64,000 bases of DNA, from the NCBI GenBank assembly GCA_002269645.1, contig NIVC01000324.1:3012-67011 (forward strand), read 5' to 3'. This DNA comes from Macrostomum lignano (lineage: Eukaryota). The notes beneath the pieces are model-generated. The model searched no databases. It saw nothing but the letters and a program-made list of their open reading frames with translations, and was not told the origin of the DNA. Below are positions 3,001 to 62,130 of the stretch, piece by piece. The number at the start of each line of letters is the position of its first letter. Position 1 is the first letter of the stretch. Both the position numbers and the translations under genes were made by a program.

Positions 3001-6000
3001 TGTTCTTAATAAGACAGAAAGCATTGAGAGGCTGGTTAAGGTCAGGTAAAGTTCCTGGACCAAGTTCCAGCGTGTTAGTGCTCGTAGTAGTAACGAAAGA
3101 TAAAATATTTACGACCCGCGCAGTCAGTAGTAAGTATTTTTAAGTAGCCAATAGTAAGTACCACTGATTTTTCAGATACAAGTTCATCGCTTCGCGAATC
3201 TTTGAGCACGCCTGTCACAAGCATTGTCGACGACGACCTAAACGTCATATTGGCAAGTGCAAGCGCGACACGTGCCGTCGTCTGCTTACCGAAGTCACGT
3301 GGCATCGTGACAAGCGCAGCGGAAAGTGCGTCCGACGTCGCCGGACAAAATCTCGCACCTGCTGCTGCAGAGGTCACAACTCGAATCGTCTGGTGTGCAG
3401 AAACGGTCGCCGACTTCGAATGATTGTCCGATACAAGTTCGACGGGCGTCGAGGCGTCTGTCATAGGCGAGTTCATAAAATCGACACTTCAGCCTCGCTA
3501 AACGCTCGCTGCCGTCCAGTCAAACTGCGACGTCGCGGCTCTTGCAATGCTAAAGGCTGGCGTCGCGACGTTTTGGTACATCGCTACGTCACTAAGAAAT
3601 CTTGTCGATGCCGCACAAAACGGCGCCACCTACGCGCTGTTCGCTGCCGTTGTCCATCGACTAGGCGTCAGCGAATATGTCGACGCAATCGACGCGGTCA
3701 TTGGTACCGTGTTACCTGCCGTATTGACTACAAACTGCATCGTCGCGGTTGCAAAAAGCGGAAAAATTGTTCAAAGCGTCGAGTCGTTTGTCGACACAAG
3801 AAAAGAGTTGTCCGGGTTCGAGGCCGGTGCCATCGACATAGCTGCCGTCGCCAAAACAGTGTAGTCACATACAGCGTTCATAAATGTCGCTGCAGGAGAA
3901 GAGTCAAGACTTTAACTCAAGTCTGCTGTAAGTATTCGTAAGAGTATTTGCATGCGTGCTTAGAATACAAAAATGCGTCTTGCTCGTTGAAAACCAGCCA
4001 CGTATGCAAAAAGCAGGCGCGGCGCATCCAAAGGCTGTGTACAGCTAGGTGCCCATAACTTCCGTCCAGAATTTTCACCACAGCTCAGGGCCATCTATCT
4101 TATCAGAGTTAGGTAAAGTGAAGCTCAACTTCATTTTTTGTCTTTTCTTACTGTGGCTATTTTGAGGGGTGACACTATACGACGTAGCCTATTAGGTTGC
4201 GCACTAACCGCGAAAAACTCTGCTTAACTTGCCTCTCTAGCAGTGAATTTACTAGCCTACTAAGCTAGGGACCTTCTGGCCTACTAGAGCGCTATTATGG
4301 CATTACAAAAGTCGCTCTATTAAAACATTTTCGGAACATTTTCAACAGGCTGCAAGCGAAAAAGTCGTAAGCACAGTTTCTGCAACAAGCGCCGACACGC
4401 TATAGTTCGAGTTAAAACGCACTACCGCCTGGTTCACGGCGCTTGTCGCCCTGTCTCGCGCAAGACGGAGCACCCCATCCGATGTCGCACCGATCGTCGT
4501 AAGCTACCGGGCCACTGCCGACGCCACAAAAACGGCTTTTATCGACGCGTAGTCACGCAGACCTGGCATCGACGTGGCTGTCGTTGCATTCGACGAACAC
4601 GTAAAAGTGGTTTGCGCCTTTGCCGATGCTCGTCGAAGAGACGCAAAGTTCAGCGCTGTCTGTCGCGACGTGGAGTGATAGTTACAATCGAGAGTTGGCT
4701 GCATCCGCGCGGCAACAGCTGTAAACTGCGCAGTCGCACCGTCGGCCGAGAGCGAGTCACCTGCAGCCATCGTCGCGTTCGAGTTAAGGGTCGCTGCGGT
4801 CGCGGCAAAGCGGCAAAGGCGGCCGCTGCTGCAGCGAAGGACGGTCGGAAATTCGCTATTGAAACTGTCACGTGGCAGCGCAGGGCTGGCTGCAAGTGCA
4901 GGCAAGTTGAAGCGTTTTTGATCTTGATTTGTTTATCTTGTCTTTTATCTTTCTGTTTTATCTTTATCGTCTTTTTGCAGACGGATCCGCCGCTCCCACG
5001 TCCGCCTCTGTGCATGTACAAAACGCGTTCGTCGAGTGACACGTTGCCATGCCAACCGCCAACTTTCGGTTACGCTTTATCATCACCGTCTGGCGCATTC
5101 TCGCAATGGATCTGCGACATGCAAAATCGTACGAAAAACTTGCCGCCACCGAGTCCGCTGCCGTCGACCAGTGATCCGCATGGGACGAAAATGTCACTCA
5201 GGCAAACGAACTGTCATCGTTAAAGTCTTCACGCCGAAGAAATGTCGCTGCAAAGCAAAACTTTACCGACGTTTGATAGCCTGCAAAGCCGCCTGCACTG
5301 ACAAGCTTCCTAGCAAGGTGTGCAAGAAGTGGGCCGCATCTCGTAAAATTAAGATTTGCCGTCGACACCCCCACTTGGCTGATCGGCTGTGCGCTGCAAC
5401 ATGTGGAAAATGTAAGCTTAGGATAGTGGAACTGTCTTCGATTTTCCATTTTTATAACTAAGTTATGACTCTATTTAATTTACCATCAAACAGGCTGCAG
5501 CAAATCGACAATCGTCCACGTAGGAGAGCACTGTCTGCTGGCTCAAAATCGTACACTGCTTGCCAGTCAAAATGATACGAGTAGCAACCATAAACTTACC
5601 CTTGCAAAGCTGACCACGTTTGAGGCCTGCAGCCGTTCCTGCTTGGCTAATCCTCACTGCCGAGCCTTTGACTATAAACGCAGCAGCGGCCACTGTCGCC
5701 TGCTCCGCATCAACCACCACAGCCTCGACCGCGACCTTCCGGAACTCAAGCCCACCCCGGGCTGCCTGCTGTTCGAAAAAGCTTGTCAACGAAAGCCAAA
5801 AGGCTGCCCGCATCGACGCATTCAGAAGTCTTGGGCCTGCGTTTGTCGTCGATTCTTTGGCAAGGATCGACGTCCGCTGTGTTATCGACGCGCTCTCGTC
5901 GCTGTTTACTTCCGACGCAGCCGCCGCCGCTGTGTCCACAAACTTCGCCGAATTTTAATTCCTTGCCACGATTGCGAGGACAAGAAGCGCTGGTGTCAAC

Positions 6001-6900
6001 AAGCCGCTCGTAAGGGCAAGTGCGCCAAGGATTCCCGCGTGAGAAAACTTTGTCCGCACAGCTGTCACAAGTGCGCCCGACATCGCACTCGGGCAGGACG
6101 CGCAGGTCATGGTCATCGGCTAATGCGCCGTCGCATTAGTGCTTGCTCCAAATCTGGCTGGCGTAAGATCGTTCGAGGTGGATTGTACTACGACAGGCGA
6201 CTGAAGCTGTGGCGAGTTTATAAGGGAGTGAGTCACAAACGCTGCATTCGCTGCCCAATCGGTTCCAGACTGATTGTTGGACGCTGCACCAAGCACGGCA
6301 AACGGAAGCTGACCTGGATTGTGGTTACTAGACACAGTCGTCGGGGTCATCACGGTCGACCCTGTCGAATCAAAAAGAAACATCGCGTGGTGAGCTGTCG
6401 CGGCTGCGGCGGACTCGATCTAGTTCGAAAAGTTGGCCATTGCGTTCGCAAGCCGGGACACGGCTGGCACCGCGTGGTGACGAGTACATTCACGGAGCGC
6501 GACAGTCGTAAGCATCGCTGCATTGTGCGCCACCATAAGAACACATTCGCGTGCTCGCCGAAGTGTCCCAAGCGTAGCGTTAGCCGGTCTCGGTGCAAGT
6601 GCGGCCGTCGCGTTGTTTGCACTCGGTATTATGTCACCTACCCCGGTCGGCGCCGCTGCGTGGCTAAGAAGATCACCCGAAGCGAGAAATGCGTCAGTGC
6701 CGCCTCTGGTAAGAACCGTCCTTGACGTCAAATTACTTTTTACAAGCATGAACAAATCCACTATAGTGATCTACAATTTCTAACTCTTTTTAGATTGCAA
6801 CGATCAAATCAAGGCGCACGATTGTCAAGCAATCAAGCACTCGGGAATGTGCTCTACGCTGCACCGTCTATGCGCGAAAACTTGCGGTCGCTGCAAGTAG
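1..6900 (+). CDS. 3' part (10 exons, ~1755 aa visible, 5'-incomplete) of a large Arg/Lys/Cys-rich repeat protein with vWA, PAN/apple and 3 ShK domains; probably secreted
   Basis: Exons join in frame with matching phases: <3-228, 661-930, 1000-1128, 1225-1771 (alternative in-frame acceptor at 1171), 1862-2899, 3176-3927, 4349-4901, 4981-5411, 5494-6708, 6794-6900 (TAG 6898-6900). Total 5268 nt = 1756 codons. Introns are GT-AG except 4902-4980 (GC-AG). AATAAA at 7013-7018. The protein is built of ~45-50 aa units with G-x-C, CxC and CCC motifs and many Arg/Lys. Confidence 0.85.
304..520 (+). mobile_element. tRNA-derived SINE with MIR/CORE-like central domain, copy 1 (intronic)
   Basis: A-box-like TAGCCTACTAGTTGG and B-box GGTTCGATTC, then GTCCTTGAGCAAGACACCTAACTCTG...CAGCTGTAAAATGGG resembling the CORE-SINE consensus. 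A second copy lies inverted at 43461-43670. Confidence 0.75.
2397..2899 (+). other. von Willebrand factor A (vWA) domain within gene 1, degenerate MIDAS
   Basis: IVELVVAVDLHS...FLEVVLRQFESGSAKVRTMLFTYSS...TNLFGALKAI...RIVLVVTRGRH...ARLFVIGFG follows the vWA beta/alpha pattern. DxSxS is changed to DLHSP and TDG to TRG. Confidence 0.75.
5294..5411 (+). other. ShK (ShKT) domain 1 of gene 1
   Basis: CTDKLPSKVCKKWAASRKIKICRRHPHLADRLCAATCGKC: six-Cys pattern ending CxxxCxxC. Confidence 0.8.
5494..5790 (+). other. PAN/apple domain of gene 1
   Basis: ...FEACSRSCLANPHCRAFDYKRSSGHCRLL matches the PAN core C-x3-C-x5-C-x-(A/S)F-x-Y-x6-C-x-L. Confidence 0.7.
5970..6075 (+). other. ShK domain 2 of gene 1
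   Basis: CEDKKRWCQQAARKGKCAKDSRVRKLCPHSCHKC. Confidence 0.8.
6794..6900 (+). other. ShK domain 3 (terminal exon of gene 1)
   Basis: The exon is too short for the ORF track. Manual translation gives (D)CNDQIKAHDCQAIKHSGMCSTLHRLCAKTCGRCK*, in phase with the donor at 6709. Confidence 0.8.
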
Positions 6901-8581: not shown

Positions 8582-9965
8582 TGTCTGCCTGTCTATCTGT
8601 CTGCCTGCCTGTTTTAGTGTCAGTCTATCTTCGTTCTGCCTGTCTGTCTTAGTGTCTGTGTCTTAGTGTCTGTCTGTCTGTCTATCTATCTTAGTGTCTG
8701 TCTGTCTTAGTGTCTGTCCGTCTGTCTGTCCGTCTGTCCGTCTGTCTGTCTATCTGTCTGCCTGCCTGTTTTAGTGTCAGTCTATCTTCGTTCTGCCTGT
8801 CTGTTTTAGTGTCTGTGTCTTAGTGTCTGTCTGTCTTAGTGTCTGTCTGTCTTAGTGTCTGTCTGTCTTAGTGTCTGTCTGTCTGTCTGCCTGTCTATCT
8901 GTCTGCCTGCCTGTTATAGTGTCAGTCTATCTTCGTTTCTGCCTGTCTATCTTAGTGTCTGTGTTTTAGTGTCTGTCTATCTTAGTGTCTGTGTCTTAGT
9001 GTCTGTCTGTCTTAGTGTCTGTCTGTCTCTCTGCCTGTCTATCTTAATGTCTGTCTGTCATAGTGTCTGTCTGTCTGTCTCTCTGCCTGTCTATCTTAAT
9101 GTCTGTCTGTCTTAGTGTCTGTCTGTCTGTCTCTCTGCCTGTCTATCTGTTTGCCTGCCTGTTTTAGTGTCATTCTATCTTCGTTTCTGCCTGTCTATCT
9201 TAGTGTCTGTGTCTTAGTGTCTGTCTGTCTTAGTGTCTGTCTATCTTAATGTCTGTCTGTCTTAGTGTCTGTCTGTATGTCTGCCTGTCTATCTGTCTGC
9301 CTGCCTGTTATAGTGTCAGTCTATCTTCGTTTCTGCCTATCTATCTTAGTGTCAGTGTTTTAGTGTCTGTCTATCTTAGTGTCTGTGTCTTAGTGTCTGT
9401 CTGTCTTAGTGTCTGTCTGTCTCTCTGCCTGTCTATCTGTTTGCCTGCCTGTTGTAGTGTCATTCTATCTTCGTTTTTGCCTGTCTATCTTAGTGTCTGT
9501 GTCTTAGTGTCTGTCTGTCTTAGTGTCTGTCTATCTTAGTGTCTGTCTGTCTGTCTTAGTGTCTGTCTGTCTGTCTTAGTGTCTGTCTGTCTGTCTTAGT
9601 GTCTGTCTGTCTTAGTGTCTGTCTATCTTAGTATCTGTCTGTCTGTCTTAGTGTCTGTCTGTCTTAGTGTCTGTCTGTCTCTCTGCCTGTCTATCTGTTT
9701 GCCTGCCTGTTTTAGTGTCATTCTATCTTCGTTTTTGCCTGTCTATCTTAGTGTCTGTGTCTTAGTGTCTGTCTGTCTTAGTGTCTGTCTATCTTAGTGT
9801 CTGTCTGTCTGTCTTAGTGTCTGTCTATCTTAGTGTCTGTCTGTCTGTCTGCCTGTCTATCTGTCTGCCTGCCTGTTATAGTGTCAGTCTATCTTCGTTT
9901 TTGCCTGTCTATCTTAGTGTCTGTGTTTGTCTGCCTTCCTGCCTGTTTTAGTGTCTGTCTGTCTT
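8582..9965. repeat. compound microsatellite/low-complexity array (TCTG, TTAGTG, CTAT units) with higher-order blocks
   Basis: Directly visible. The ORFs here (SVCL repeats) are artefacts. Confidence 0.95.
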
Positions 9966-11049: not shown

Positions 11050-12330
11050 GTTGAAACGCACCGGAAGAGGGATTAGCAGTTCATTTAAACACACCGAAAG
11101 AAGGATTAACAGTACATTTAAACACACCGGAAGAAGGATTAACAGTTCATTTAAACACACCGGAAGAAGGATTAACAGTTCATTTAAACACACCGGAAGA
11201 AGGATTAACAGTTCATTTAAACACACCGGAAGAGGGATTAACAGTTCATTTAAACACACCGGAAGAAGGATTAACAGTTCATTTAAACACACCGGAAGAA
11301 GGATTAACAGTTCATTTAAACACACCGGAAGAAGGATTAACAGTTCATTGAAACACACCGGAAGAAGGATTAACAGTTCATTTAAACACACCGGAAGAAG
11401 GATTAACAGTTCATTTAAACACACCGGAAGAAGGATTAACAGTTCATTGAAACACACCGGAAGAAGGATTAACAGTTAATTGAAACACACCGGAAGAAGG
11501 ATTAACAGTTTATTTAAACACACCGGAAGAGGGATTAACAGTTTATTTAAACACACCGGAAGAAGGATTAACAGTTCATTTAAACACACCGGAAGAAGGA
11601 TTAACAGTTCATTTAAACACACCGGAAGAAGGATTAACAGTTCATTGAAACACACCGGAAGAAGGATTAACAGTTAATTTAAACACACTGGAAGAAGGAT
11701 TAACAGTTCATTTAAATACACCGGAAGAAGGATTAACAGTTCATTGAAACACACCGGAAGAAGGATTAACAGTACATTGAAACACACCGGAAGAAGGACT
11801 AACAGTACATTTAAACACACCGGAAGAAGGATTAACAGTTCATTTAAACACACCGGAAGAAGGATTAACAGTTCATTTAAACACACCGAAAGAGGGATTA
11901 ACAGTTCATTTAAACACACCGGAAGAAGGATTAACAGTTCATTTAAACACACCGGAAGAAGGATTAACAGTTCATTTAAACATACCGGAAGAAGGATTAA
12001 CAGTTCATTTAAACACACCGGAAGAAGGATTAACAGTTCATTTAAACACACCGGAAGAAGGATTAGCAGTTCATTTAAACACACCGGAAGAAGGATTAAC
12101 AGTTCATTTAAACACACCGGAAGAAGGATTAACAGTTCATTTAAACACACCGGAAGAAGGATTAGCAGTTCATTTAAACACACCGGAAGAAGGATTAACA
12201 GTTCATTTAAACATACCGGAAGAAGGATTAACAGTTCATTTAAACACACCAGAAGAAGGATTAACAGTTCATTTAAACACACCGGAAGAAGGATTAACAG
12301 TTTATTTAAACACACCGGAAGAGGGATTAG
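11050..12330. repeat. 33-bp tandem minisatellite, ~38-39 copies (AAACACACCGGAAGAAGGATTAACAGTTCATTT)
   Basis: Directly visible; near-identical units with no spacers. Confidence 0.95.
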
Positions 12331-14686: not shown

Positions 14687-30558
<15,872 letters not shown>

Positions 30559-32161: not shown

Positions 32162-32962
32162 ACAAGTGCTTTCTGATCCCCCCTGGACATTGCAAGTGCT
32201 TTCTGATCTCCCCCCTGGACATTGCAAGTGCTTTCTGATCTCCCCCTGGACATTGCAAGTGCTTTCTGATCTCCCTCTGGACATTGCAAGTGCTTTCTGA
32301 TCTCCCTCTGGACATTGCAAGTGCTTTCTGATCTCCCCCCTGGACATTGCAAGTGCTTTCTGATCTCCCCTTGGACATTGCAAGTGCTTTCTGATCTCCC
32401 CTGGACATTGCAAGTGCTTTCTGATCTCCCCCTGGACATTGCAAGTGCTTTCTGATCTCCCCTTGGACATTGCAAGTGCTTTCTGATCTCCCTCTGGACA
32501 TTGCAAGTGCTTTCTGATCTCCCCCTGGACGTTGCAAGTGCTTTCTGATCTCCCCTTGGACATTGCAAGTGCTTTCTGATCTCCCCCTGGACATTGCAAG
32601 TGCTTTCTGATCTCCCCTGGACATTGCAAGTGCTTTCTGATCTCCCTCTGGACATTGTAAGTGCTTTCTGATCTCCCCCTGGACGTTGCAAGTGCTTTCT
32701 GATCTCCCCTTGGACATTGCAAGTGCTTTCTGATCTCCCCCTGGACATTGCAAGTGCTTTCTGATCTCCCCCTGGACATTGCAAGTGCTTTCTGATCTCC
32801 CCTTGGACATTGCAAGTGCTTTCTGATCTCCCCCTGGACATTGCAAGTGCTTTCTGATCTCCCCCTGGACATTGCAAGTGCTTTCTGATCTCCCCTTGGA
32901 CATTGCAAGTGCTTTCTGATCTCCCCCTGGACATTGCAAGTGCTTTCTGATCTCCACCTGGA
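32162..32962. repeat. 30-32-bp tandem minisatellite (TGGACATTGCAAGTGCTTTCTGATCTCCCCC), ~25 copies
   Basis: Directly visible. The length of the C-tract varies, so the overlapping ORFs are artefacts. Confidence 0.95.
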
Positions 32963-33351
32963 CACCCGGATGTTTCAAGCGTCTTAAAGTATCCGGTCCG
33001 GGTAGCTCAAGCTGCTTTACGTTCTCAGGGGTGCTTGCAGTCTCCCCGGAAGTCACAAGCTAAGTTGAAACATCCTGCCGAAAAACTAAGGTTTGTTTTG
33101 AGATATGCGGATTGTGATTTCCGGGTCAAAGAACGATAATGTACTAAAACGATTAGTCTTGGAACAAAAAGATTAAGTGAAAGTGCTTCAAGGATGTAAA
33201 ATTACTGAGTTAGGAAATTTTTTAATGTTTCTATAGACCCCATGCCTCTATCAAAGTTTAGGTTAAAAATCGATCCCCACATGAAGAATCTCGCCACCCT
33301 AAAACCCCCATTCCCCATGTCCCGGTGGGTGGCTTTAAGTAAGTTTTCGCT

Positions 33352-43878: not shown

Positions 43879-46800
43879 TCAATGATCGTCATTAAGCATC
43901 TGCTTCATCAGCAACTGCTGGTCCTGGTAACAGCGAGAACACAGGAAATTGGTCTCCTCTCGAGCGAACATGTCGCAGTTCGGGCCGACACACTGCATCA
44001 GAGCCGAACGGCGCATTTGTTGGTCGATAATTTCGGCAGACCGGCGCTTCTGTAATTCGTCTAATTGTGAGAACCGAGCCATAGCCGAGGTCAGGTAGCT
44101 GCTAACTGCGTCAGTGAAATGTGGCGGTCGATTAGTAACGCCCAGGTGGGCGCATAGCAACCCGGTTGAGGCGCTATCCAGTAGCGCCTGGTCCGCCACC
44201 GAGGAGGCATCAGCTGATGAAGCTGGCGTTGCAACCGACGGCCATTTACTAGATTTACCTGTTCGCCTAATTGGTAGACGCTGCTGCATGGCTTTGAGCA
44301 GTTGATGGCCAAGAGATCGGCTCGGGTTCTGTTGGCCCTGCGACTGGGAAACAAGGACGGGAGGGGTAGGTGTTAGTACGATAAACTAGTACTAGTATAA
44401 CATGATCCACTACGTTACACTGTTACACTACATGTTACAGTAGATGTTACACTATACTTTACAGTAGCTCTTACACTATATGTTACAGTAGCTGTTACAC
44501 TATATGTTACAGTAGCTGTTGCACTGTATGTTACAGTAGCTGTTACACTATATGTTACAGTAGCTGTTGCACTGTATGTTACAGTAGCTGTTACACTATA
44601 TGTTACAGTAGCTGTTACACTGTATGTTACAGTAGCTGTTACACTGTATGTTACAGTAGCTGTTACACTGTATGTTACAGTAGCTGTTACACTACATGTT
44701 ACAGTAGCTGTTACACTACATGTTACAGTAGCTGTTACACTATATGTTACAGTAGCTGTTACACTACATGTTACAGTAGCTGTTACACTACATGTTACAG
44801 TAGCTGTTACACTACATGTTACAGTAGCTGTTACACTACATGTTACAGTAGCTGTTACACTATATGTTACAGTAGCTGTTACACTACATGTTACAGCAGC
44901 TGTTACAGCATCTGTTACACTATATGTTACAGTAGCTGTTACACTACATGTTACAGTAGCTGTTACACTACATGTTACAGTAGCTGTTACACTACATGTT
45001 ACAGTAGATGTTACACTACATGTTACAGTAGCTGTTACACTACATGTTACAGTAGCTGTTACACTATATGTTACAGTAGCTGTTACACTACATGTTACAG
45101 TAGCTGTTACACTACATGTTACAGTAGCTGTTACACTACATGTTACAGTAGCTGTTACACTACATGTTACAGCATCTGTTACACTACATGTTACAGCATC
45201 TGTTACACTACATGTTACAGCATCTGTTACACTACATGTTACAGCATCTGTTACACTACATGTTACAGCATCTGTTACACTACATGTTACAGCATCTGTT
45301 ACACTATACTTTACAGTAGCTGTTACACTACATGTTACAGCATCTGTTACACTACATGTTACAGCATCTGTTACACAACATGTTACAGCAGCTCACCATG
45401 CCCCCTGGATACAATCCATCAACACCGCCGCGCATTCTACGACAGTCGAGAGTAGCAGATCTCTGCTGCAACTGCGAATGCAACTGTTGTTGCTGCTGCT
45501 GCTGTTGATACTCAACAAAGCCGCTATCGTCTGCTGAAACAGCACCGACTGTTGCCATAGACAACTGCGCCGCATTGCCAACTGAACTACCCGAACGAGT
45601 TAGTCCAACTACTACTGGGCGTTGAGTAACAGCAGCAACGGCAGCCTGAGCGACAGCCGCCGGAAGCGGCTGCGGCGGAGCCACAGGCAATCTCAGAGTT
45701 GAGCATCTCAGATAAGAAGCCAGCAGTTTAGCTCGAAGCCTGCCGCCCATTTCTGTATCGGGCGTCGCCACTGGAGCGTCGTTAACAACAGCCGCAGCGG
45801 CAGATTTCGACGACCATTTCCAGTGCGGCCCGGGATCGGCACTAAAGTGCAGAGGCAGCGGGGTGTGCAGATCGCAGCAGCACAATGGAACAGCGTAGGG
45901 CAAGTTTACAGCAGTTTCCATGGGAACCAATGCGGAGAAATGAGCTGCATCGTAGGCTAGCAATACCGGATGCTTAGAACAATGCTCTGGTTTCTCTAAC
46001 AGCGGCAGATAGATTCCGGCAAACGGTATTGGAGCTAAATTGTCACCTTCGGAGTCTTTGACAAACTGATCGGCTATCACTATGATGGGCCGGCGGAATA
46101 CATTGGCGGCTACGAATACGTGGATTTCTTCTAGAGAATCCAGCTGATGCTGATGCTGCTGACCGATCTGCTGCTGTTGTTGCAGCTTAGGCTGGGCGCT
46201 AGCCAGTTGTAGCAACGATTTCCATTCCGATTGCCATTCCGACTCGCTTAATCTCAGGCCCGTGGCTCGGTACAGCTCCCGGGCTGTCTGCCATCTCCAG
46301 CGCCTGTACACAGCTGCACTATGAGACAGCAAATATTCGTGCAACGCGCTTCGGAATACCAATTGACGATCGTGGAAGCCTAGACTGCTCAGACTGATAG
46401 CATGTAGAAGGCAGTTGCCATCGCCGCTCGTTTGCAGAGGCCACAATCGTTGGGACAGGCCAAGGTCGTGCCTAGGTATTAGTGTGAGGACTTACGCGTC
46501 AGCTGCTTGTACTCTAAGCATATTAAATCTCTAGTCTACCTTCAGGAAACTGGTAACAATGTCAGGCAGAATCCCTAGTTTACTTTCAGGAAAAAGTAAC
46601 AATGTCAGACTATATCTCTAGGTAGTTTACTTTCAGGAAACTGGTAACAATGTCAGGCTACACCCCTAGTTTACCATTAGGAAACTGGTAACAATGTCAG
46701 GCTACATCCCTAGTTTACCCTCAGGAAACTGGTAACAATGTCAGGCTACATCCCTAGTTTACCCTCAGGAAACTGGTAACAATGTCAGGCTACACCCCTA

Positions 46801-48048
46801 GTTTACCATTAGGAAACTGGTAACAATGTCAGGCTACATCCCTAGTTTACCATTAGGAAACTGGTAACAATGTCAGGCTATATCCCTAGTTTACCATTAG
46901 GAAACTGGTAACAATGTCAGGCTACATCCCTAGTTTACCATTAGGAAACTGGTAACAATGTCAGGCTACATCCCTAGTTTACCCTCAGGAAACTGGTAAC
47001 AATGTCAGGCTACATCCCTAGTTTACCCTCAGGAAACTGGTAACAATGTCAGGCTACACCCCTAGTTTACCATTAGGAAACTGGTAACAATGTCAGGCTA
47101 CATCCCTAGTTTACCATTAGGAAACTGGTAACAATGTCAGGCTACATCCCTAGTTTACCATTAGGAAACTGGTAACAATGTCAGGCTACATCCCTAGTTT
47201 ACCCTCAGGAAACTGGTAACAATGTCAGGCTACATCCCTAGTTTACCATTAGGAAACTGGTAACAATGTCAGACTACATCCCTAGTTTACCATTAGGAAA
47301 CTGGTAACAATGTCAGGCTACATCCCTAGTTTACCATTAGGAAACTGGTAACAATGTCACGCTATATCCCTAGTTTACCATCAGGAAACTGGTAACAATG
47401 TCAGGCTACCCCTTACTACTAACCAATGGTAGACAAAATTAACCAAAAGTAAACTTACCACCAATTCAAACAACCAGCTTGCTCCAAGTTAACCAGAGTC
47501 CCCGTATCCAACAGTTCCTTCTCCAAAAAGGCTCGAAATTCCAACGGATAAGTTGACAAGTCAGGCAATATGAAGGAATAACTACCATTGGCGCCGCAAG
47601 CACTACCATTTCGTGACAGGCTGCGACCATTGCCAGAATTAGAGCAACCGCTACCAGCTGTACCGCCACATCCGCCATTGTTGTTTACCCTCCTACCCGG
47701 CACATTTTCCGCTTGCACAACAGCCCTATTCGATGCCAACACTTCGTCAAATGCGCACGAGAAGCCGCGTTGGGTGCGAGATTCTACGCTCGAAGAGGCT
47801 GAGGAAGAATTTATAGCGGCACAACGCGCCGACACCATTCTGGATGCCTCGCCTACAGCAGCTGGCATGCTTGGTGACTGCTGCATCTGTTGCTGCTGGG
47901 CCGGCGAGTCTTCGCTACTAAAAGCGCTGCTGCATGCGCTACTACTGCTACTACTGCTAGTAGCGGTGCTACTATTACTTCCGATTAAATTGGCATTGGT
48001 TTTGACAGTTAATGGCTCCGGTTTGCTATCTAAATGTACAGTGTTCAT
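43879..48048 (-). CDS. OTUD7B: OTU deubiquitinase of the Cezanne/OTUD7 (A20-family) type with C-terminal A20 zinc finger; at least 3 exons, ~709 aa
   Basis: Exons (-): 48048-47459, 46471-45397, 44343-43879; phases match, 2130 nt. LEQAGCLNWW/HDLGLSQRLWPLQTSGDGNCLLHAISL...GFHDR, LEEIHVFVAANVFRRPIIV, IYLPL, LAYDAAHFSAL. A20 finger CVGPNCDMFAREETNFLCSRCY. An acceptor at 48051 suggests an upstream exon. The symbol indicates the OTUD7A/B family, not proven orthology. Confidence 0.88.
44421..45390. repeat. 24-bp tandem minisatellite (TGTTACAGTAGCTGTTACACTACA), ~40 copies, filling an OTUD7 intron
   Basis: Directly visible; starts about 6 nt from the donor at 45396. Confidence 0.95.
46540..47408. repeat. 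44-bp tandem minisatellite (AGGAAACTGGTAACAATGTCAGGCTACATCCCTAGTTTACCATT), ~20 copies, filling an OTUD7 intron
   Basis: Directly visible. Confidence 0.95.
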
Positions 48049-52239: not shown

Positions 52240-54659
52240 TTCCATAAGCCTAGCTACAATCTAGACCCATGTTATACTAGCTATTTTATTCATACTTTAG
52301 CTTTAGGCCTAGCTATATTTGATTTTATAAATATCTTAAACTAGCCTACAGCCATAAAAAATAAATATAGCTATAATTATTTGAGCTGTATATAGGCCTA
52401 GTTATATGTCTGTTATAGCTAGGCCTATTGATAGCCGAGTATAATAATTTTACAATGAATATTTCTATCTATCTATTCATTCTATAATTTATCTAATTCC
52501 AACAAGCTAATTTGGTCCTAATACTCTACCTTGCTAGCCCTATTAACCACCCTTGCTAATCTAGTCTTGTTGTCCTATCCTTGCTAATCTAGCCTTAATG
52601 CCTCACCCTTTGCTAATCCAGTCCTGCTGCCTTACACCCTGCTTCCCATTCACCCACCTTGCCTTATACCTGCTTTCCTATCCACCCACTTTCCCCTCTA
52701 CCTATCTTCCCATCCACCTACTTTCCCATCTACCCACTTTCCCATCCACCTGTTTTCCTATCTACCCACTTTCTAATCTATTAGCCTCCCTCCTTTTCAA
52801 CCTCCCCCTTCTACTTGTCATGCTACATTTGTTTAATTAAGTGTGATATTACCATATCTATATCTATCAACAAGTTAAAAAATAATCATTGTCAAAATTG
52901 TGAAGAATGATATATATTGTCATATGAGCCCATTTTATGCATTAAGAAATTTATTTATAATTGGTTATAGCTTAATGAATATTTTTAGGGACATCAATTA
53001 ATATTGAATATAGTTAACAAAATAAAAGGCATTTGCAGTCACCACAAAAGAAAAGTCAATGCCTAGTCTATGTTTATCAAGGCCAAGGGAGCCAATAAGT
53101 GTCACTAGTAAGATCAGCTAGTAAGATTTGCTTTAGCATTGTGAATGCTTTTGGTATGGAATATGCTTGTATATTTATCTTTCAAATAATTTTTCAAAGC
53201 AAAGAATAGCCTTCTTAAGTGAAGCATTTAAGCATCTGAGTGCCAAGGAAAAACAAGCATATAAAAATGCCACTAAAAAAGCTTGTGTTCGAGGTCTGTC
53301 AGGTCTTGAATTGGAGCAAATGGTGATCTAGTAATTTTTTTAAATATTTGCAGGAGGATTATAGGCACCATGGCACAAGGCCTTTGAAAAGATCATTCCA
53401 CAAACAGTGAAAAGGCAATTCTGCCTATTCCATTTACTCCTTAGCTTACTCTTCACAAACATACATGGATATGTGTGTAGGCATACACACAACTTGTCTA
53501 TCTGCTTTAGATGACTCTATCATCCTCAGGCTATTATCAGCCTCAGAATATTAAAGAGCCACCATGTCAAACATAGAAGAGCCACCATGTCAAACATTAA
53601 AGAGCCACCATGTCAGCAACCTTATTTATACCCTATTTCACCCCATTCCAGCCAATATAATATTCCAGATTATTTAACTTATTTGTTACTTGATCAAGGA
53701 AGTCTTTGTACTTGACAAACATTTCTGATGATCTAGAACATAGACTATTGATATAAGAAAATAAGCTGAAGTGCAAGTTCAAGTTTTTATTATAGAAATA
53801 AGAGAAGAATAGGAACAAAAATGGTGGTAAACTGGTATATTACAATACTTGTACTACCTATCTATGATTTGAGCTTCTTTTTAGAGAATTTGCAATGCTG
53901 TTTGATGTTTGTTAGCCTTAATAATATCTTTTCACATGCAGGCACATGCCCTATAGGAAAACATTGTAAAAAATGATTTCTAATAATCCTAAAATGCGGT
54001 AAAATAATTTGACTCCTTTTCTAAAGTGCGCATCTGCGAGTTTTCAATGTAATTGTAAAGAAGCATAATGGCACACATTTCTGGTCATGTGTTTCTCCAG
54101 AAGTTTCTAGACCTCTCAATTCTGCCAGTAGAGTTAGTTATATAGGTACGAGTAGGCTCATAAATCTGCAAGAGTTGAGGTTATAGGCATTATCATTTAT
54201 AATTTCTATTGACTTCAAGTTCAATATGAGTGATGATGTACAAGTAGGCCTACTTCTATTTGAAAATCAAGAGTAGCATAAAATACTGTCATTTTACTAT
54301 ACTATTGTCATTTTTGCCAAAAATGTATTTGCTTTATCTACTTGTTGGAAAAGCATAATTAAAAAATAGAATATACAATTAAAAGAGTAAACTAAAATCT
54401 GTCAAAAACATAACATTTTATAGAGCATGGTTTGCCTTTCAACCAGCTATTTGAAACAGAAAAAAATATCTCACTAAAATGGGGGAAAAATATGTTTGAC
54501 CTTTTCATCCAAAAAACTGTGTTTACATAAAGCCTTCTAAACACCTGATGGCTAGCTCTGCAGCATGAATTAAGTAGTTTATTGAAACTACTATTAATTT
54601 ATTGCACTAATACTTATACAAAAAGAAAAGTAGAGGAGTAAGCAGCTGTGAGTCTAGTT

Positions 54660-55200
54660 AGGAACAAGTCAACAAATTCAACCCAAATTTGCCAAGCCAG
54701 ATCAGCAGATTAGAGGCTAAATTTCTACAGGCTACTAGACCACACTGATACATGTATGATGCAGAAATAATTGTTTAGGTAAGTCAATTGGCTTCCAAGA
54801 TAAGCAAAGGTGGAGAAATAGAGCCATCTTATAGTGTATTTAGATAGGAGAAAGTCAATGAATTCAACCCAAATTTGCCAAGCCAGATCAGCAGATTTGT
54901 GGCTAAATTTCTACAGGCTACTAGACCACACTAGTACATGTATGATGTAGAAAGAATTGTTTAAGTAAGTCAATCGGCTTCCAAGATATGCAAATGCAGA
55001 GAAATAGCCATCTTGTAGTGTATTTAGATAGGAGAAAGACAACAAATCCAACCCAAATTTGCCAAGCTGGATCAGCAGATTAGCGGCTAAATTTCTACAG
55101 GCTACTAAACCACACTGATACATGTATGATGCAGAAAGAATTGTTTAAGTAAGTCAATCGGCTTTCAAGATATGCAAAGGCAGAGAAATAGCCATCTTAA
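54660..55200. repeat. three diverged tandem copies of a ~185-bp unit
   Basis: AACCCAAATTTGCCAAGC...GGCTAAATTTCTACAGGCTACTA...CATGTATGATG...GAGAAATAGCCATCTT repeated at ~54661, ~54847 and ~55031. Confidence 0.85.
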
Positions 55201-55982
55201 TAGCAGCTAGTACATACAGCGACAGCAGTGGTTTTTTCACTGTATTTACACCGACGGACTGCCAATGAATAGAAACTCTTGCGGCGCATTCCTAGGATTC
55301 TTATTCGCTCTTTAACAATAGCGCCGGAAGTTTGTAGCGAGTATCTTTGGCTATATGTATCCAGCAATAAGATATACTTAGTTTTTTTCTTAAACCTTCT
55401 AAACATTAAATCAACAGCATTCGAACCATTTTTGCAACTGCTAATCTGAAAGTTTTTGGAGGTCACTTCAAACATTGTTAAGTCAATTTTGCTGGCTTGT
55501 ATACTTATACTCATATTTTACTTTTGCTACATTGTCAACTTAGAGTACTTTGCCTACTTAACCTAAATAACCTACCTTTTCTCCCCAACCTACTTTGCCT
55601 ACCTATGTAGACTGTCTTGCCTACTTAACATACTGTACTATTTAAATAAACTATTTTGTCTATAATTAACCAACCTTATCTACAACCTACTTTGCTTACT
55701 TAACAACCTTGTCTATTTAACCTACTTTGCTTACTTAACCAACCTTGTCTACTTAACCTACTCATACTTTGCCTATTTACAATAACTTACTGTATTATCT
55801 AAATAAACTGCTTTGACTATTTAACTAGCCTTGTCTACTAAATCTACTTTGCCTACCTAAACTGCCTATTCTACTTTATCTACTTTGCTTACTTCTTAGC
55901 ATATTTTTTCCTGTATACTTTGTCTACCTGTTAGAATTTTGTTTAAGACTAGGCTAATGGCTAAAATCAGGTAAGATCTTGA

Positions 55983-58300
55983 GTGAAGGACCTTGATGAA
56001 GCTGTGCAGGTTGTTATTACATTCCTTGAAGCAGGTGAAAAGTTAAGTTATAGGAGCATTGTGCAGCGATTTGGTGTTTTTCATCAAATTTTGCTTTATC
56101 ACATAAGGAAGGTTTCATCTAACAAACCCCAAAAGCCTTTTAATTCACAGAAACAGGTTTTCACAGTCAAAGAGGAAGCTGTCTTTGTTGAGACATTAGC
56201 AATGCAAAGGCAGCATATCCCAATGACTAGAGTACAGGTCTTGGAAATGGCCTCTCTAGCCCTAAAGAAAATTTCTGCTTTTAGTGACAACTCAGATCAG
56301 TTTAAAAACTGTAAAAAAAGTGACGCTGACAGAAGGTTGGCTAAACTGCTTCTTTGTGTGCCACCAGAGTGTCCTGTCAATCTGGACACCTCAACCGATC
56401 AACTACACCCAATTTAGTCACTAAGAAGCAGATACTTCAGCCGCTTACTTTGCTAGAAAGTCCTGCAAAGTAGTTGTTAGAAAGGGATCCAAATTTGTTT
56501 ACACTAAGACAGTAGAAAAGAAAATGCTACCATCATGGTTACAATCCAGGCTTGTGATCTATGCTGCCACCGCATTTTGTTTTTGCAGGAAAGAGACATA
56601 ATGTTGCAGACATTTACAACTATTCCATGACAAAGAAAGGTTGGTTGACCAGGGAGTCATTTTGGAAGTGGGTCATGGAGACATTCCTATTCTACCTAGA
56701 GTAGAAAAAAATCAGAAGACCTGTGATTTTATTTTGCAATAATTACAATTTGCAACATAATGCTTAGATGTTGGAGCTGCTAAGCAAGGAAAATGTAAAC
56801 AGGCTTTAACTGTAATCTATCTAATTATATGAGTTCCTGAAAAGTAAAAAAACTAGCTAGTATATTTTGTTTCATTCTGATCTTTCTATCAGGTATTGTA
56901 TATCTTGTTTTAATTGATAATCCCTTTATCTTTTTTTCTATCAGTTGACAATTCATAGATATTTATTTAATTCTGAAATTATTAAACAGGTCTACATTTT
57001 TGGCCAAGTCCCAAACACAATGCATGTAATGCAGCCTTTGGATGTTGCAGTCTTTTGATCAGTTAAGGCTGCTTGGAACAATCTCATTGCGCAGCAAGCG
57101 AGGCTAGATTCAGCTGGAGTTCTGTGTAATATGGACTTTATACAACTGTTTTTGTCTTCTTTGGCTGAGTCAGTCTCCATTACCAATGTAAAGTCTGGGT
57201 TTCGAGTGTGTGGCCTCTTTCCATTCAACCTAGAAGCCTTATTATATGACAAGTTGTATGTTGCCTCCAGTTTGGCCAGCCAGCAAGTGGGTGCAACTGC
57301 GACAATGACTGCCCAAGGCCATGGCAAGGCATCGAGCGGCAATGCCACCTTGGCTGTCCAAGGCGATGGCGAGGTGCCAAGCAGCAATGTCACCTCAGCT
57401 GTCTAAGGTGATGGCGAGGCACCGAGCTGCTTAGTGAGCACCACTAGCATTGATTTAGATGCCGATCAAAGTGCTATCTCTCTGACTCTAAAGTCTTCAC
57501 CGAATTCAACACTTGAAATTTTACGTTCAGTGGCTCGCCAATACAACCATCCTGAAATGTTGTAGCCTAAGCCAAAAGCTAATCAGCCTAAGCGACAGCG
57601 GCCTTCAATTGCGAGGGAAGCGGGCATGCCTAAATTGACCAGCCCAAAGTTTCTGGAAGTTCTTCGTCAAAGAGAAATCCAAAAGCGAGAAATCGACAAT
57701 TGGCACAATTAAAATGCCAAAGAGTGCTAGCTGAAATGAAAAAAAAACAAGGCCACAGCAGCACAGCAGTGGCAGCTACAGAAGATGGCCCAGATTAGAA
57801 GTCTCAATCCAGTGGCTGAATTGCAGAATGCAAAATCTAAACTGCGCTTAATTGGCAAGAGGCTAGGGTGCATCTTGGGTGATGCTGCTGCTGATAGCAA
57901 TTGCTTTTTTGACTCTATTTGCCAACTGCTTTCCCAGGAAGGCATTGTTGAAAACCCTATAAGACTCCACACTTTGGCATGCACCAAACTAATAAACCCA
58001 GAATTTTTTAAAGTTTCTAAAGACTTCAACGAATCTGGCATGAATCTGATTACCTACCTGGACAACATGCGAAAGCTAACTTCCTACATTGAGAATATTG
58101 TAGTACTGTCTACTAGCCATATATTAAAGTGTGAAATTCATATTTTCCTACCCACTGCATTGAAAAAGTCAAGAACTTGCATGCCGCATCAAAGCCATCT
58201 ATAGAGAGTTATTGAACCATTGCAGACAAAGCCAACCAGTGGTCCTCTACTGGTGGCTCACATTGCAGAACATCATTACATGCTGCTTTTGTCTATATAG
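55983..58300 (+). pseudogene. decayed pogo/Tigger-type (DDE_1) transposase with C-terminal OTU-like cysteine protease domain
   Basis: HTH (LSYRSIVQRFGV), CENP-B-like HTH (VFTVKEEAVFVETL...IPMTR), NLDTS, KVVVRKGSK, KENATIMVT, KKGWLTRESFWKW. From 56990 one frame reads VPNTMHVMQPLDVAVF*SVKAAW...KSGFRVCGLFPFN...LTSPKFLEVL...AADSNCFFDSICQLL...YLDNMRK...LLVAHIAEHHYMLL, interrupted only by in-frame stops. Confidence 0.8.
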
Positions 58301-58577
58301 TGCGCCAGCTTAGGTTCTGCCACAGGGCCAAGTGATTTAAGAATACATACTAATTAAAAATAAATAATTTACCGACTGACCAACTGACCCTCACCGACTT
58401 GAGCTCCAGTGCATTTGCGGCTGGCGAGTCCCTTGGCTGTCTCTGGCATCTGACAGTTAACCATTGTCAGGAGATTCAATGAGCACATTCTGACATCATC
58501 GGAATTTAAGATCCGAAAAAAAATTTGGTCAAATATTTATTATGAAATCTTGTCAATAAGCATCCTACAACTAATTG

Positions 58578-59000
58578 CACTCACTATACTTCCTATACCA
58601 TCCTGACCATCTGGATGACCATTGGGACCTTCAACAGATATGTCCATTGGACTTCTAGCAGTCTAGCATATACTTTGGCTAGAAATTCTTGATCAAGCCT
58701 CACCAATGAGCAACATGACACTACCTGTCGCACTCACTATACTTCCTGCACCATCCCGACCATCTGGACAACTATTGGGACCTTCAACGGATGTATCCAT
58801 CGGACTTCTGGCAGTCTAGCATATACTTTGGCTAGAAATTCTTGATCAAGCCTCACCAATGAGCAACGTGAAACTCCCTGTTACACTCATTATACTTCTT
58901 GCACTATCCCGACCATCTGAACGACTGTTGGGACCTTCAACGGAAGTGTCCATCGGACTTCTGGCAGTCTAGCATATACTTTGGCTAGAAATTCTTGATC
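58578..59000. repeat. three tandem copies of a ~152-bp unit
   Basis: CACTCACTATACTTCC...GGGACCTTCAAC...GCAGTCTAGCATATACTTTGGCTAGAAATTCTTGATCAA at ~58578, 58731 and 58883. Confidence 0.85.
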
Positions 59001-60637
59001 AATGAGCACCCTAGCACTCTAAGCGTGCAACTAAACTAATGAGCAACCTGCAAATCACTGCAATCACACCTAGTCATTTTGCACTGTTTTGCTTATCAAT
59101 TGTTAAGAAAAATGTCCAAGGATCAATTTGAAAAAAAAACAGAGTCACACAAAAGAAAGTGCTTGTGAATTGTTCTTAAAACTGGTACAACAAAGTAAAG
59201 TAGCTTTGGAACTGTGTCATTGAATAAACAGTCTAATAGACATAGAATAAACTGTTGTAAAGGAATAAACAGTCTGCAATGATCTACAATAAACAGCATG
59301 CAAGGGTGTACATATCAAAACCAAAAGTGTACACAGCAAGGCCTCCACTTTTTTTTATTCACCGCCATGTCTTGTCCCACTAGAACTCATAAACCTGCCT
59401 TTGTGCCTGTCATTAAATGTGCAAGTTGCACAGTAAAAGAATTGTTTCCGCTGTGACAACAATCAAAATTTCAGTCTGAAATTAGACCATAACTGTTATA
59501 AGAGCATTTCGAATTTCTACTGCAAATGTTGGCAGTTTTAAGCATAAAGCATAAAAGCATAAAGCATAATTTAGACAAAACTAGGTACATCTTTTAGTGT
59601 AAAAGTCTGAGTGAGTAAGAGAAAGTGACAATAAAAGTTTATAGATTATAATGGTACTTACAAGCAGTCGAAGCAAAAATAAAATGTGTCATGCACTTTA
59701 CATGCCATGTGCGAGCTGCAAAGACATTTTTCACAGACATAGCACCATCAACGTTTGCCTACATTTTGTGTAGCTTCCTTACCACAAGTCACACAAATTC
59801 ATTCCCTGTCATATCGTGGTGAACTTGTGGGCAGGTGTGTCTGCTGCATTTCCACCCATTATGCTACGCAAGTAGCATATGCAACTACGCAAGGACTACG
59901 AAAGTTCTTGTTTTTGCCAAACTGCTTTAAATACCTTGCCTATGTAGTATATGCATCATATCTTGCTTCTTTACTGTGACAATTTCTGTATCTCTTGCAC
60001 CAAGAAATAAAGTTTCTGATTTCTTTCTCGCGTACACCATTCCTGGATAAATACTCCTATAAAACGGTCTTGTCAGAGGTTGGAAAGCTCATTTTAGCGG
60101 CACAAAAATGGAAAAGAAAACTAAACATGTTAGATTGTGTCCTTTTGCTTACATGTAGAAACTTAATAAATGATAGTGAATTCTAAGTGACAAACTCTTA
60201 ACTTTTAGTCAGTCAGTAGATGTTGTTGTTATTTTTCCTTTTAACAATTTTTTGGACTTAGGTGAAGTTAATTTAGTCATTAGCCAGCTTAGTCCTAGAA
60301 AAGTAACTTTGATTTAGTCAGCAGTTGTGGTTTGCCATAGACTATAGTTACTTATTACCTTGCTTACTTCACTTATTGCTGTTTCTTTGCACTTTAAAAA
60401 ACATAATTCGCATTTCAAAAGTTGATTGAATCTGTTTGGATGGCTTTTTACCATAGACAGCAAGAGATACCTCCTACTTATCTGCAAAATTCATTTACTG
60501 TCTTGACTGAAAGACAAATTCACACCATAGACAATAAATGCTTGTGGCCAGAGGAGGACAATAGAATCTAAAGAGTGAATTTAACTTGCAATTTTTCAAG
60601 TCACCCTGCCACTCTGATGAGGATACCTCTGCACTTT

Positions 60638-61613: not shown

Positions 61614-62130
61614 GTGCGTGCAGAGACTATTGATTGGACTGACATGCCACCAAGGTCAAGAAAGTGGCCAAGCGACAAGGTGCCTTGTCTGAGAGACGAA
61701 TTGAACCCTTCAATCAACTGGCAAGCAATTGGTCAAACAGAACGCAACGTTGTGATGGGCTTCTTTGATTTGGGGATGACGAACAAAAATCTTTGGGAGA
61801 GCCATGAGGACAGTTTTGAACTAGTAGACAGGATTGAAATAGAAGGAATCATAGGCGTTTTGCTCTATTGCGGTTGCAACAACCTCAGTAATGTTTTGGT
61901 CCACAATTTATGGAGCATGGATGTAAAATTTGGATACCATTCTTTGCTACAGTGTGCTTTTAGCAGGGATCAATTTGAAATGATTTGGCACAATTTATGC
62001 TTCGACATGGCCAAAAACTAGATGCAAACTGCAGCATATGACAGTATGTATGGAGTCAAGAGACTGTGGGACTCTTTTGTGTCTCGCCTGCAGGTTCTAG
62101 TACTCCCTAGGTCGTATCTATGTATTGATC
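61614..62130 (+). pseudogene. piggyBac-family transposase fragment
   Basis: IEIEGIIGVLLYCG...NLWS...AFSRDQFEMIWHNLCFD...RLWDSFV...YLCID matches the piggyBac (DDE_Tnp_1_7) N-terminal core; contains stops. Confidence 0.72.

Follow-up and report, generated by a model that had tools for sequence, protein, structure and literature searches.

The stretch of DNA analysed here, called the window throughout, comprises 64,000 nucleotides of Macrostomum lignano (assembly GCA_002269645.1, contig NIVC01000324.1, positions 3,012 to 67,011 of the forward strand). Between 55.5 and 58.3 kb it holds what is probably one decayed DNA transposon gene of the pogo superfamily (IS630-Tc1-mariner group) with an OTU domain, of the type found in deubiquitinases, at its C-terminal end. 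A single plus-strand reading frame, 56990–58299, was found by translation to contain PNTMHVMQPLDVAVF and KSGFRVCGLFPFN, both from the C-terminal half of a DDE domain of pogo type, followed by DSNCFF (57893–57910), YLDNMRK (58055–58075) and HHY (58271–58279); the OTU Cys codon lies at 57902–57904 within DSNCFF, and the two His codons of the motif EHHYM lie at 58271–58276. The frame reaches its natural stop at 58298–58300 and is interrupted before it at seven positions (Table 1). These motifs, the single frame and the seven stops had been reported in an initial annotation of the locus and were reproduced here. The frame is depleted of stops: segment 56990–58300 has 8, counting the natural one, against 24.5 ± 4.4 in shuffles, and the other five frames of the segment have 14–27 each. 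The OTU part has 2 stops where shuffles gave 10.2, and the DDE C-terminal part has 1 (4.9 expected).

Table 1. Parts of the window copy of the element, in 5' to 3' order. L001 is a near-intact relative and P0003–P0005 are pogo-type transposases that lack an OTU domain (see text); ORF, open reading frame; TRF, Tandem Repeats Finder.
Feature	Position	Strand	Basis and remarks
Array with at least 7 copies of an ~18-nt unit (core CTTTGCYTACTTAAC), located ~100 nt 5' of the ORF	55548..55861	+	Motif matches, TRF
N-terminal DNA-binding region (equivalent of HTH_psq / start of HTH_Tnp_Tc5)	55983..56321	+	First frame, stop-free
End of HTH_Tnp_Tc5 equivalent (TEGWLNCF) and start of DDE_1	56320..56558	+	Three-frame translation, alignments with L001 and P0003–P0005
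Central DDE_1 block (LPPHFVF ... IRRPVILFCN)	56561..56794	+	tblastn, 36% identity to L001
AT-rich 195-nt insert with GT..AG ends, intron-like, splitting DDE_1	56795..56989	+	Not in L001 or P0003–P0005
C-terminal half of DDE_1 (GFRVCGLFPFN...YDKL)	56990..57259	+	tblastn, 40% identity, E 6e-18; stop at 57056
Variable linker	57260..57565	+	No alignment with the longer acidic, Pro-rich linker of L001; stops at 57404, 57563
Basic patch, LTS..LE motif and long charged helix leading into the OTU	57566..57799	+	Stops at 57710, 57728, 57737
OTU-like cysteine protease domain	57800..58300	+	Pfam OTU, Cys/His motifs; stop at 58202, natural stop at 58298–58300

We searched 1.84 billion protein representatives exhaustively (phmmer) with the stop-free window segment 57740–58201. 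Two of these representatives matched at E ≤ 1e-3: P0001 (E 4.6e-9, 35% identity), the sole close relative, and P0002 (E 4.9e-4), a generic cellular OTU protein. P0001 is 644 residues of uninterrupted ORF, running from the C-terminal half of DDE_1 (RRPVVLFTN, VPNATHVMQPLDLAVF, GFRKSGIMP, YDKL) via a linker that is long, acidic and rich in Pro, then through a basic patch followed by a charged helix, into an OTU part (YGNCFFES, YIASMRR, RVAHIPEHHYMPLL), and its precomputed Pfam annotation gives DDE_1 and OTU. Its source is L001, a 3191-bp Logan contig of run SRR30276804, in which positions 142–2820 form an 893-codon frame with one TAA, at codon 229. This frame encodes, in order, HTH_Tnp_Tc5, DDE_1, the linker, the basic patch with a long helix, and OTU. 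All three Pfam domains exceed their gathering thresholds (DDE_1, 47.7 bits against 22; HTH_Tnp_Tc5, 30.5 against 22.2; OTU, PF02338, 33.0 bits, E 1e-7, against 23.3); the HTH_psq match is weak, at 12.4 bits.

The L001 ORF aligned with the window in four collinear tblastn blocks (55992–56264, 56561–56797, 56984–57352 and 57566–58297). Blocks two to four share one frame, with 31–40% amino-acid identity, and the passage from the DDE C-terminal half to the OTU is free of frameshifts. The fourth block takes in about 110 residues ahead of the catalytic Cys of the OTU, so that the homology spans the junction and extends beyond both domains. Aligned codons are 46% identical at the nucleotide level; the split of the two copies is therefore ancient, and the fusion is older than the split. 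The alignments thus show that the OTU domain was already in the ORF of the common ancestor of the window copy and L001. The initial annotation had proposed a pogo-like transposase fused in frame, and ancestrally, to an OTU domain; the ORF of L001 and P0001 and its collinearity with the window bear this out. The argument that it gave for ancestry, namely that each of the seven stops could come by one C>T change from CGA, CAA or CAG, is uninformative because the same holds for every TGA, TAA and TAG.

The alternative in which a pogo fragment came to lie in the same frame, by luck, beside an OTU fragment of a Helentron, of a Ginger1 element or of a host gene was also weighed. Two unrelated fragments share a frame one third of the time; the linker region (57281–57799) has 5 stops against 8.5 expected, a depletion that by itself is not significant; and a host OTUD7B-like gene lies 10 kb away. 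However, L001 has the identical domain order in one uninterrupted ORF, and the homology of the two copies runs through the junction and takes in the basic patch and helix. Because this homology is collinear, anciently diverged and crosses the junction, both a chance juxtaposition and a chimeric assembly of L001 are removed. Nor is Rep/helicase or integrase coding sequence found nearby: no Rep (HUH) or helicase was seen in L001, or by eye among ORFs of at least 70 residues at 48–64 kb of the window outside the element, where the ORFs scanned with Pfam were 61614–62021 and the host ORF 47455–48048 only. The host gene is represented by an exon-like ORF at 45352–46446 (minus strand) with an OTU of the OTUD7B/Cezanne type (TSGDGNCLLHA; E 6e-59 to PDB 5lru, human OTUD7B), and this exon is unrelated to the OTU of the element (hhalign probability 0.8%). 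We consider a chance juxtaposition effectively refuted and give it next to no credence. The same hhalign result led us to reject a copying of the transposon OTU from this host gene, about 10 kb upstream. OTUD7B is a metazoan gene, and so strong a match to the human protein points to an animal genome. Minisatellites stand around the OTUD7B-type exon, at 44420–45393 (24/48-nt unit) and 46527–47409 (44-nt unit).

Further searches returned little beyond L001. Word-indexed protein searches gave no match with the window OTU and linker, or with the C-terminus of P0001. A full-length profile built from the two sequences returned P0001 and three pogo transposases without an OTU, P0003, P0004 and P0005, and nothing else. 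OTU-profile scans gave no matches in the viral and prokaryotic collections and no family member in the metagenome collection, in which one unrelated HNH-SAP-OTU locus (L002) was found. P0003–P0005 are ordinary HTH_psq/HTH_Tnp_Tc5/DDE_1 transposases at 22–32% identity and group together; the motifs LPPHFVF, IRRPV.LF.N and HVMQPLD are common to the window copy and L001 and do not occur in them. This distribution of motifs fits a single acquisition of the OTU on the branch from which L001 and the window copy descend. P0003 (from L003, a contig of Logan run SRR26533679), the closest of the OTU-less relatives, has a C-terminal extension of its own of about 150 residues (residues ~600–757) that matches nothing in Pfam and closes in a compact stretch of conserved appearance containing EEGNFVIFKYEEDFFPGQILEK; additions at the C-terminus may differ from one member of this pogo clade to another.

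The window copy itself is a long-dead pseudogene that is unable to encode anything. Its N-terminus has no Pfam match of its own and is collinear with the HTH region of L001 (55992–56264 against L001 residues 10–101; 30% identity, E 1e-6, tblastn). A frameshift lies in an A7 run near 56320 and others near 56521 and 56559; there is a stop at 56422, together with a gap of about 30 codons ahead of the first catalytic Asp relative to L001 and P0003–P0005, and two more stops, at 56702 and 56765, fall within the central DDE_1 block. The absence of frameshifts noted in the initial annotation holds for the stretch from the C-terminal half of DDE_1 to the OTU; the N-terminal half (55983–56794) is more heavily damaged than that annotation suggested, with 3 further stops, 3 frameshifts and the ~30-codon gap. 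In total, 10 stops interrupt the reading frame of the copy, which has also undergone 3 frameshifts and one deletion (~30 codons), and from this damage we judge it long dead. Removal of the 195-nt insert and bridging of the frameshifts gave DDE_1 (PF03184) at 33.3 bits (E 4.4e-8). In the Pfam check of the repaired frame that had been suggested, DDE_1 was accordingly recovered; the OTU was borderline (scores below) and the N-terminus went without a match.

CpG observed/expected is 0.31 in the copy and 0.79 over the window as a whole, and TG and CA are raised in the copy; this fits a methylated repeat decaying by deamination. Compared with L001, changes from G/C to A/T are in excess (381 vs 184). 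CpG deamination is a possible source of at most 2 of the 7 stops of the frame, the two TGA. A recent C>T decay of an L001-like sequence was tried as an account of the copy and rejected: the codons are only 46% identical and every substitution class is represented.

Excision of exactly 195 nt from DDE_1 gives gap-free collinearity with L001 and P0003–P0005 (SKEN/VYIFGQVPN vs RQEQVILYGLVPN), and for this reason we describe the insert as intron-like. The 8-mer TAAACAGG occurs at both ends of the insert, at 56796–56803 and 56983–56990. An insertion with TAAACAGG as its target-site duplication was rejected: removal of 187 nt would break the frame, whereas 195 nt gives exact collinearity. The variable linker contains a 45-nt (15-codon) tandem repeat, in frame, of 2.6 copies (57309–57427; TRF). 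The basic patch ANQPKRQRPS (57578–57607), which resembles a nuclear localisation signal, is conserved with L001.

At the level of sequence, the C-terminal domain is an OTU domain. A profile built from its two sequences and searched against PDB matched OTUD3 (4bou, E 1.2e-3) and OTUD5, with E-values from 1e-3 to 5e-2; these matches cover the whole domain, and the Cys and His motifs (DSNCFF and EHHYM in the window, YGNCFF and EHHYM in L001) are aligned with DGNCLF and HY of OTUD3. NCFF and EHHY are identical in the two copies, which elsewhere are ~32–33% identical. The coiled coil that had been placed ahead of the OTU is in keeping with a 55-residue helix predicted at the equivalent place in L001, with a predicted local distance difference test score (pLDDT) of 68–84 in the first AlphaFold model.

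A number of results weigh against a transposon that carries an active OTU protease, beginning with the OTU itself. The window OTU is borderline in Pfam (24.2 bits when isolated and 20.8–21.5 in longer queries, with the threshold at 23.3), and a PDB search with a single OTU sequence gave no match. The third catalytic residue of OTU proteases is not conserved: two residues beyond the His, where OTUD enzymes usually have Asp, Asn or Glu, both copies have Met, and three residues ahead of the Cys the window copy has Asp where L001 has Tyr. AlphaFold runs on alignments of three and four rows reached pLDDT 51.8 and 48.1 and gave no confirmation of the fold; the best Foldseek match, the OTU domain of yeast Otu2 (E 1.9), is not significant and comes from a poor model. 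Both the deubiquitinase activity of the domain and its target are ones that we infer. The domain might instead have the OTU fold and be no deubiquitinase, serving in self-cleavage of the transposase, much as viral OTU-like or PRO proteases cleave their own polyprotein, or acting as a catalytically dead module that binds ubiquitin. The lack of conservation of the acidic third residue at either canonical position would suit this, as would the great divergence of the domain, which drew just the 2 of 1.84 billion representatives at E ≤ 1e-3. Transposon OTU domains have so far never been assayed for catalytic activity (PMC9741609). Against it, the identity of NCFF and EHHY in copies so divergent otherwise argues for ancestral catalysis, and the best structural-family matches, OTUD3 and OTUD5, are bona fide deubiquitinases. 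We regard an OTU fold of this other kind as highly unlikely.

The transposase half raises doubts of its own. The second catalytic position is Asn in both OTU-bearing copies (window 56738–56740, TGC AAT; L001 1030–1032, ACT AAC) and Asp in P0003–P0005 (LFLD/LFVD). The first and third catalytic Asp are present (in the window at 56431–56433 and, in HVMQPLD, at 57041–57043), and the spacing of 35 residues from second to third, within the ~29–36 typical of the superfamily, gives a D-N-35-D pattern. Passer and Fot have this spacing (DD35D), and PMC7386202 gives the pattern DN35D for POGK, a domesticated gene. Either the Asn would be ancestral, and the transposase inactive or domesticated, or the Asp would have been lost independently in the two copies; Asp301 of L001, three residues downstream of the Asn, could substitute as the second catalytic Asp. 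The ancestral state at this position is uncertain because both copies are disabled. Seed-based search and Smith-Waterman alignment of the flanks of each copy gave no terminal inverted repeats (TIRs) or TA duplications above shuffles; the ends may be eroded or missing, the window copy being old and L001 beginning inside its 5' array. The 64-kb window holds no second copy of the element, and two members of the family were found in all the collections searched (protein representatives, metagenome, viral and prokaryotic). The flanks of the two copies share no similarity. Tandem arrays stand on either side of the window copy, with a 184-nt unit (x3) at 54655–55199 and a 153-nt unit (x2.8) at 58577–59002; no similarity between these two arrays was found in either orientation.

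The window matches the 18-nt unit at 8 sites when 2 mismatches or fewer are allowed, where chance would give 0.44; 7 of these sites cluster on the plus strand in the array of Table 1, upstream of the ORF, and TRF gave periods of 18 and 36. L001 has an array of a 19-nt unit (x7, CGTTGCTTAAYTACTTAA) directly upstream of its ATG. C(G/T)TTGCTTA...CTTAA is common to the units of the two arrays, and the alignment of one array with the other is marginal (score 35, shuffle maximum 32). These 18–19-nt arrays are candidates for subterminal repeats bound by the transposase.

The results on the transposase half bear on a further possibility, in which the gene is a host DDE_1-OTU protein derived from a pogo transposase, like POGK and POGZ, with the dead transposase serving as a DNA-targeting module for the deubiquitinase and the window copy as a pseudogenised paralogue. 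Such a domestication would account for the Asn that copies of ~33% identity both have in place of the second catalytic Asp, with DN35D as in POGK (PMC7386202), for the failure to find TIRs and target-site duplications in the flanks of either copy, for the extreme rarity of the family in the databases searched and for the intron-like insert of the window copy. Yet both known copies are disabled, L001 by one stop and the window copy by many stops and frameshifts; the latter is CpG-depleted in the manner of a methylated repeat; the 18–19-nt arrays before both ORFs are easier to read as subterminal binding sites than as a conserved promoter; the flanks of the copies are dissimilar; and the two Asn could represent independent decay, or Asp301 could stand in for the lost residue in L001. 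On balance we think a domesticated gene rather unlikely.

The locus is more probably the remnant of a pogo transposon with a C-terminal OTU, and the alignment with L001 shows a single ancestral ORF encoding N-terminal HTH domains, DDE_1, a variable linker, the patch resembling a nuclear localisation signal with the long helix, and the OTU. In the mechanism that we propose, the HTH domains would bind the 18–19-nt array 5' of the ORF, and DDE_1 would perform, or would once have performed, the cut-and-paste chemistry. As a nuclear deubiquitinase or protease of ubiquitin-like modifiers, the OTU tethered to them would act either on the transposase itself, which would be stabilised against degradation, or on chromatin or repair factors carrying ubiquitin at the site of the break. 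A like role has been proposed for the OTU and Ulp1 domains of Ginger1 and Helitron elements. More tentatively, and in the knowledge that it may well be wrong, we suggest that an undescribed animal pogo lineage gained a catalytically competent OTU independently of Ginger1 and the Helitrons. Its DNA-binding and DDE module would carry the enzyme to the transposon ends, there to edit ubiquitin on the transposase or on factors of break repair, and the elements, or a DN35D derivative domesticated by the host, would then be DNA-targeted deubiquitinases.

Elsewhere in the window, a GC-rich (54–57%) retrotransposon of the long interspersed nuclear element type (24229–28723, plus strand) has three consecutive open ORFs, for an apurinic/apyrimidinic endonuclease (25323–26192), a reverse transcriptase (26301–27611) and an RNase H (27608–28723); it seems far younger than the pogo-OTU copy. 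A fragment of a piggyBac-like transposase lies at 61614–62021 (plus strand; DDE_Tnp_1_7, 28.9 bits, profile positions 21–95 only). Simple repeats comprise (TTAG) x685 at 19618–22357 and (TGTC)n over ~1.3 kb at 8582–9876, and minisatellites with long spurious ORFs on both strands lie at 11054–12329 (33-nt unit, x38.7, 96% identity) and 32163–32964 (31-nt unit, x26). An ORF with a VWA domain (1965–2903, plus strand, 36 bits) and one with a PAN domain (5643–6725, plus strand, 22.9 bits) presumably represent exons of host genes with adhesion or extracellular roles. Rfam gave no match, and exact look-ups of three ORFs of the window found nothing.

Proteases directed at ubiquitin or SUMO are found in several unrelated classes of transposon, as Ulp1, OTU and VTD domains; Ulp1 proteases occur in Mutator-like elements and Ginger1 and VTD domains in Helentrons, and herpesviruses and nairoviruses make comparable use of deubiquitinases. 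If our interpretation is true, this would be a third independent capture of an OTU, by an element of the Tc1/mariner group, and would add weight to the view that deubiquitination is generally useful to DNA transposons. Among eukaryotic transposases, those of pogo and Tc1/mariner elements lend themselves most readily to assays in cells, and an intact pogo-OTU element would give a tractable test system for a transposon-borne deubiquitinase. The window copy, as a fossil, is of limited practical weight; the useful lead is the near-intact L001.

The literature agrees with the initial annotation that OTU domains occur in Ginger and Helitron elements (PMC2836005, PMC9741609, PMC11417382). In Ginger1 an OTU or Ulp1 protease lies C-terminal to the integrase-like DDE core, and a role in transposition or repair has been proposed for it, untested (Bao, Kapitonov and Jurka 2010, PMC2836005). 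Helitron/Helentron elements carry deubiquitinase domains of OTU and/or VTD type (PMC9741609, PMC11417382), for which protection of proteins required in transposition has been suggested (PMC9741609). For pogo, the survey of the superfamily (Gao et al. 2020, PMC7386202) describes KRAB, zinc-finger and CENP-B dimerisation domains as the additions in domesticated genes and makes no mention of OTU, protease or ubiquitin. The initial annotation knew of no description of a pogo-OTU fusion; likewise, a full-text literature search, with Repbase and Dfam entries outside its scope, found none that joined pogo, Tigger, Tc1 or DDE_1 with an OTU or deubiquitinase.

Ginger1 is the closest parallel in architecture, being a cut-and-paste DDE transposase of invertebrate animals with a C-terminal OTU (or Ulp1) and, in some members, introns in the transposase. 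It differs in its core, which is like a Gypsy integrase (YPYY, H2C2 zinc finger, GPY/F), whereas the element has a DDE_1 core with a Tc5/psq HTH; Pfam gave DDE_1 and HTH_Tnp_Tc5 as its transposase domains and no rve/integrase domain. Because the catalytic cores differ, the OTU fusions of Ginger1 and of the pogo element are independent. Helitrons and Helentrons share with it a transposon-encoded deubiquitinase-type domain of papain fold, but are rolling-circle elements with RepHel in place of DDE, and their OTU is usually upstream of RepHel.

The pogo families (Tigger, pogoR, Passer, Lemi, Mover, Fot) likewise have an HTH_psq/HTH_Tnp_Tc5 N-terminus followed by DDE_1, Passer and Fot have the same 35-residue gap between the second and third catalytic positions, and the nearest database proteins to the element, P0003–P0005, are ordinary transposases of pogo type. 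To this plan the element adds the C-terminal OTU, the Asn at the second position and the 18–19-nt array upstream of the ORF; it departs from it also in that TIRs with TA duplications were not found for either copy. POGK and POGZ, which derive from Passer (PMC7386202), are similarly pogo transposases with an added functional domain, and POGK is also D-N-35-D; they are, however, vertebrate genes under purifying selection with N-terminal KRAB or zinc fingers, in contrast to a C-terminal OTU in copies that are disabled. Among cellular deubiquitinases, OTUD3 and OTUD5 gave the best solved-structure matches to the OTU profile, over the whole domain; the match is weak, and the element differs in having Met for the acidic residue after the His and no UBA/UIM. 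As judged from these comparisons, the element would represent a known theme, the transposon-borne deubiquitinase, in a superfamily without a prior report of it, with its OTU probably acquired independently of that of Ginger1.

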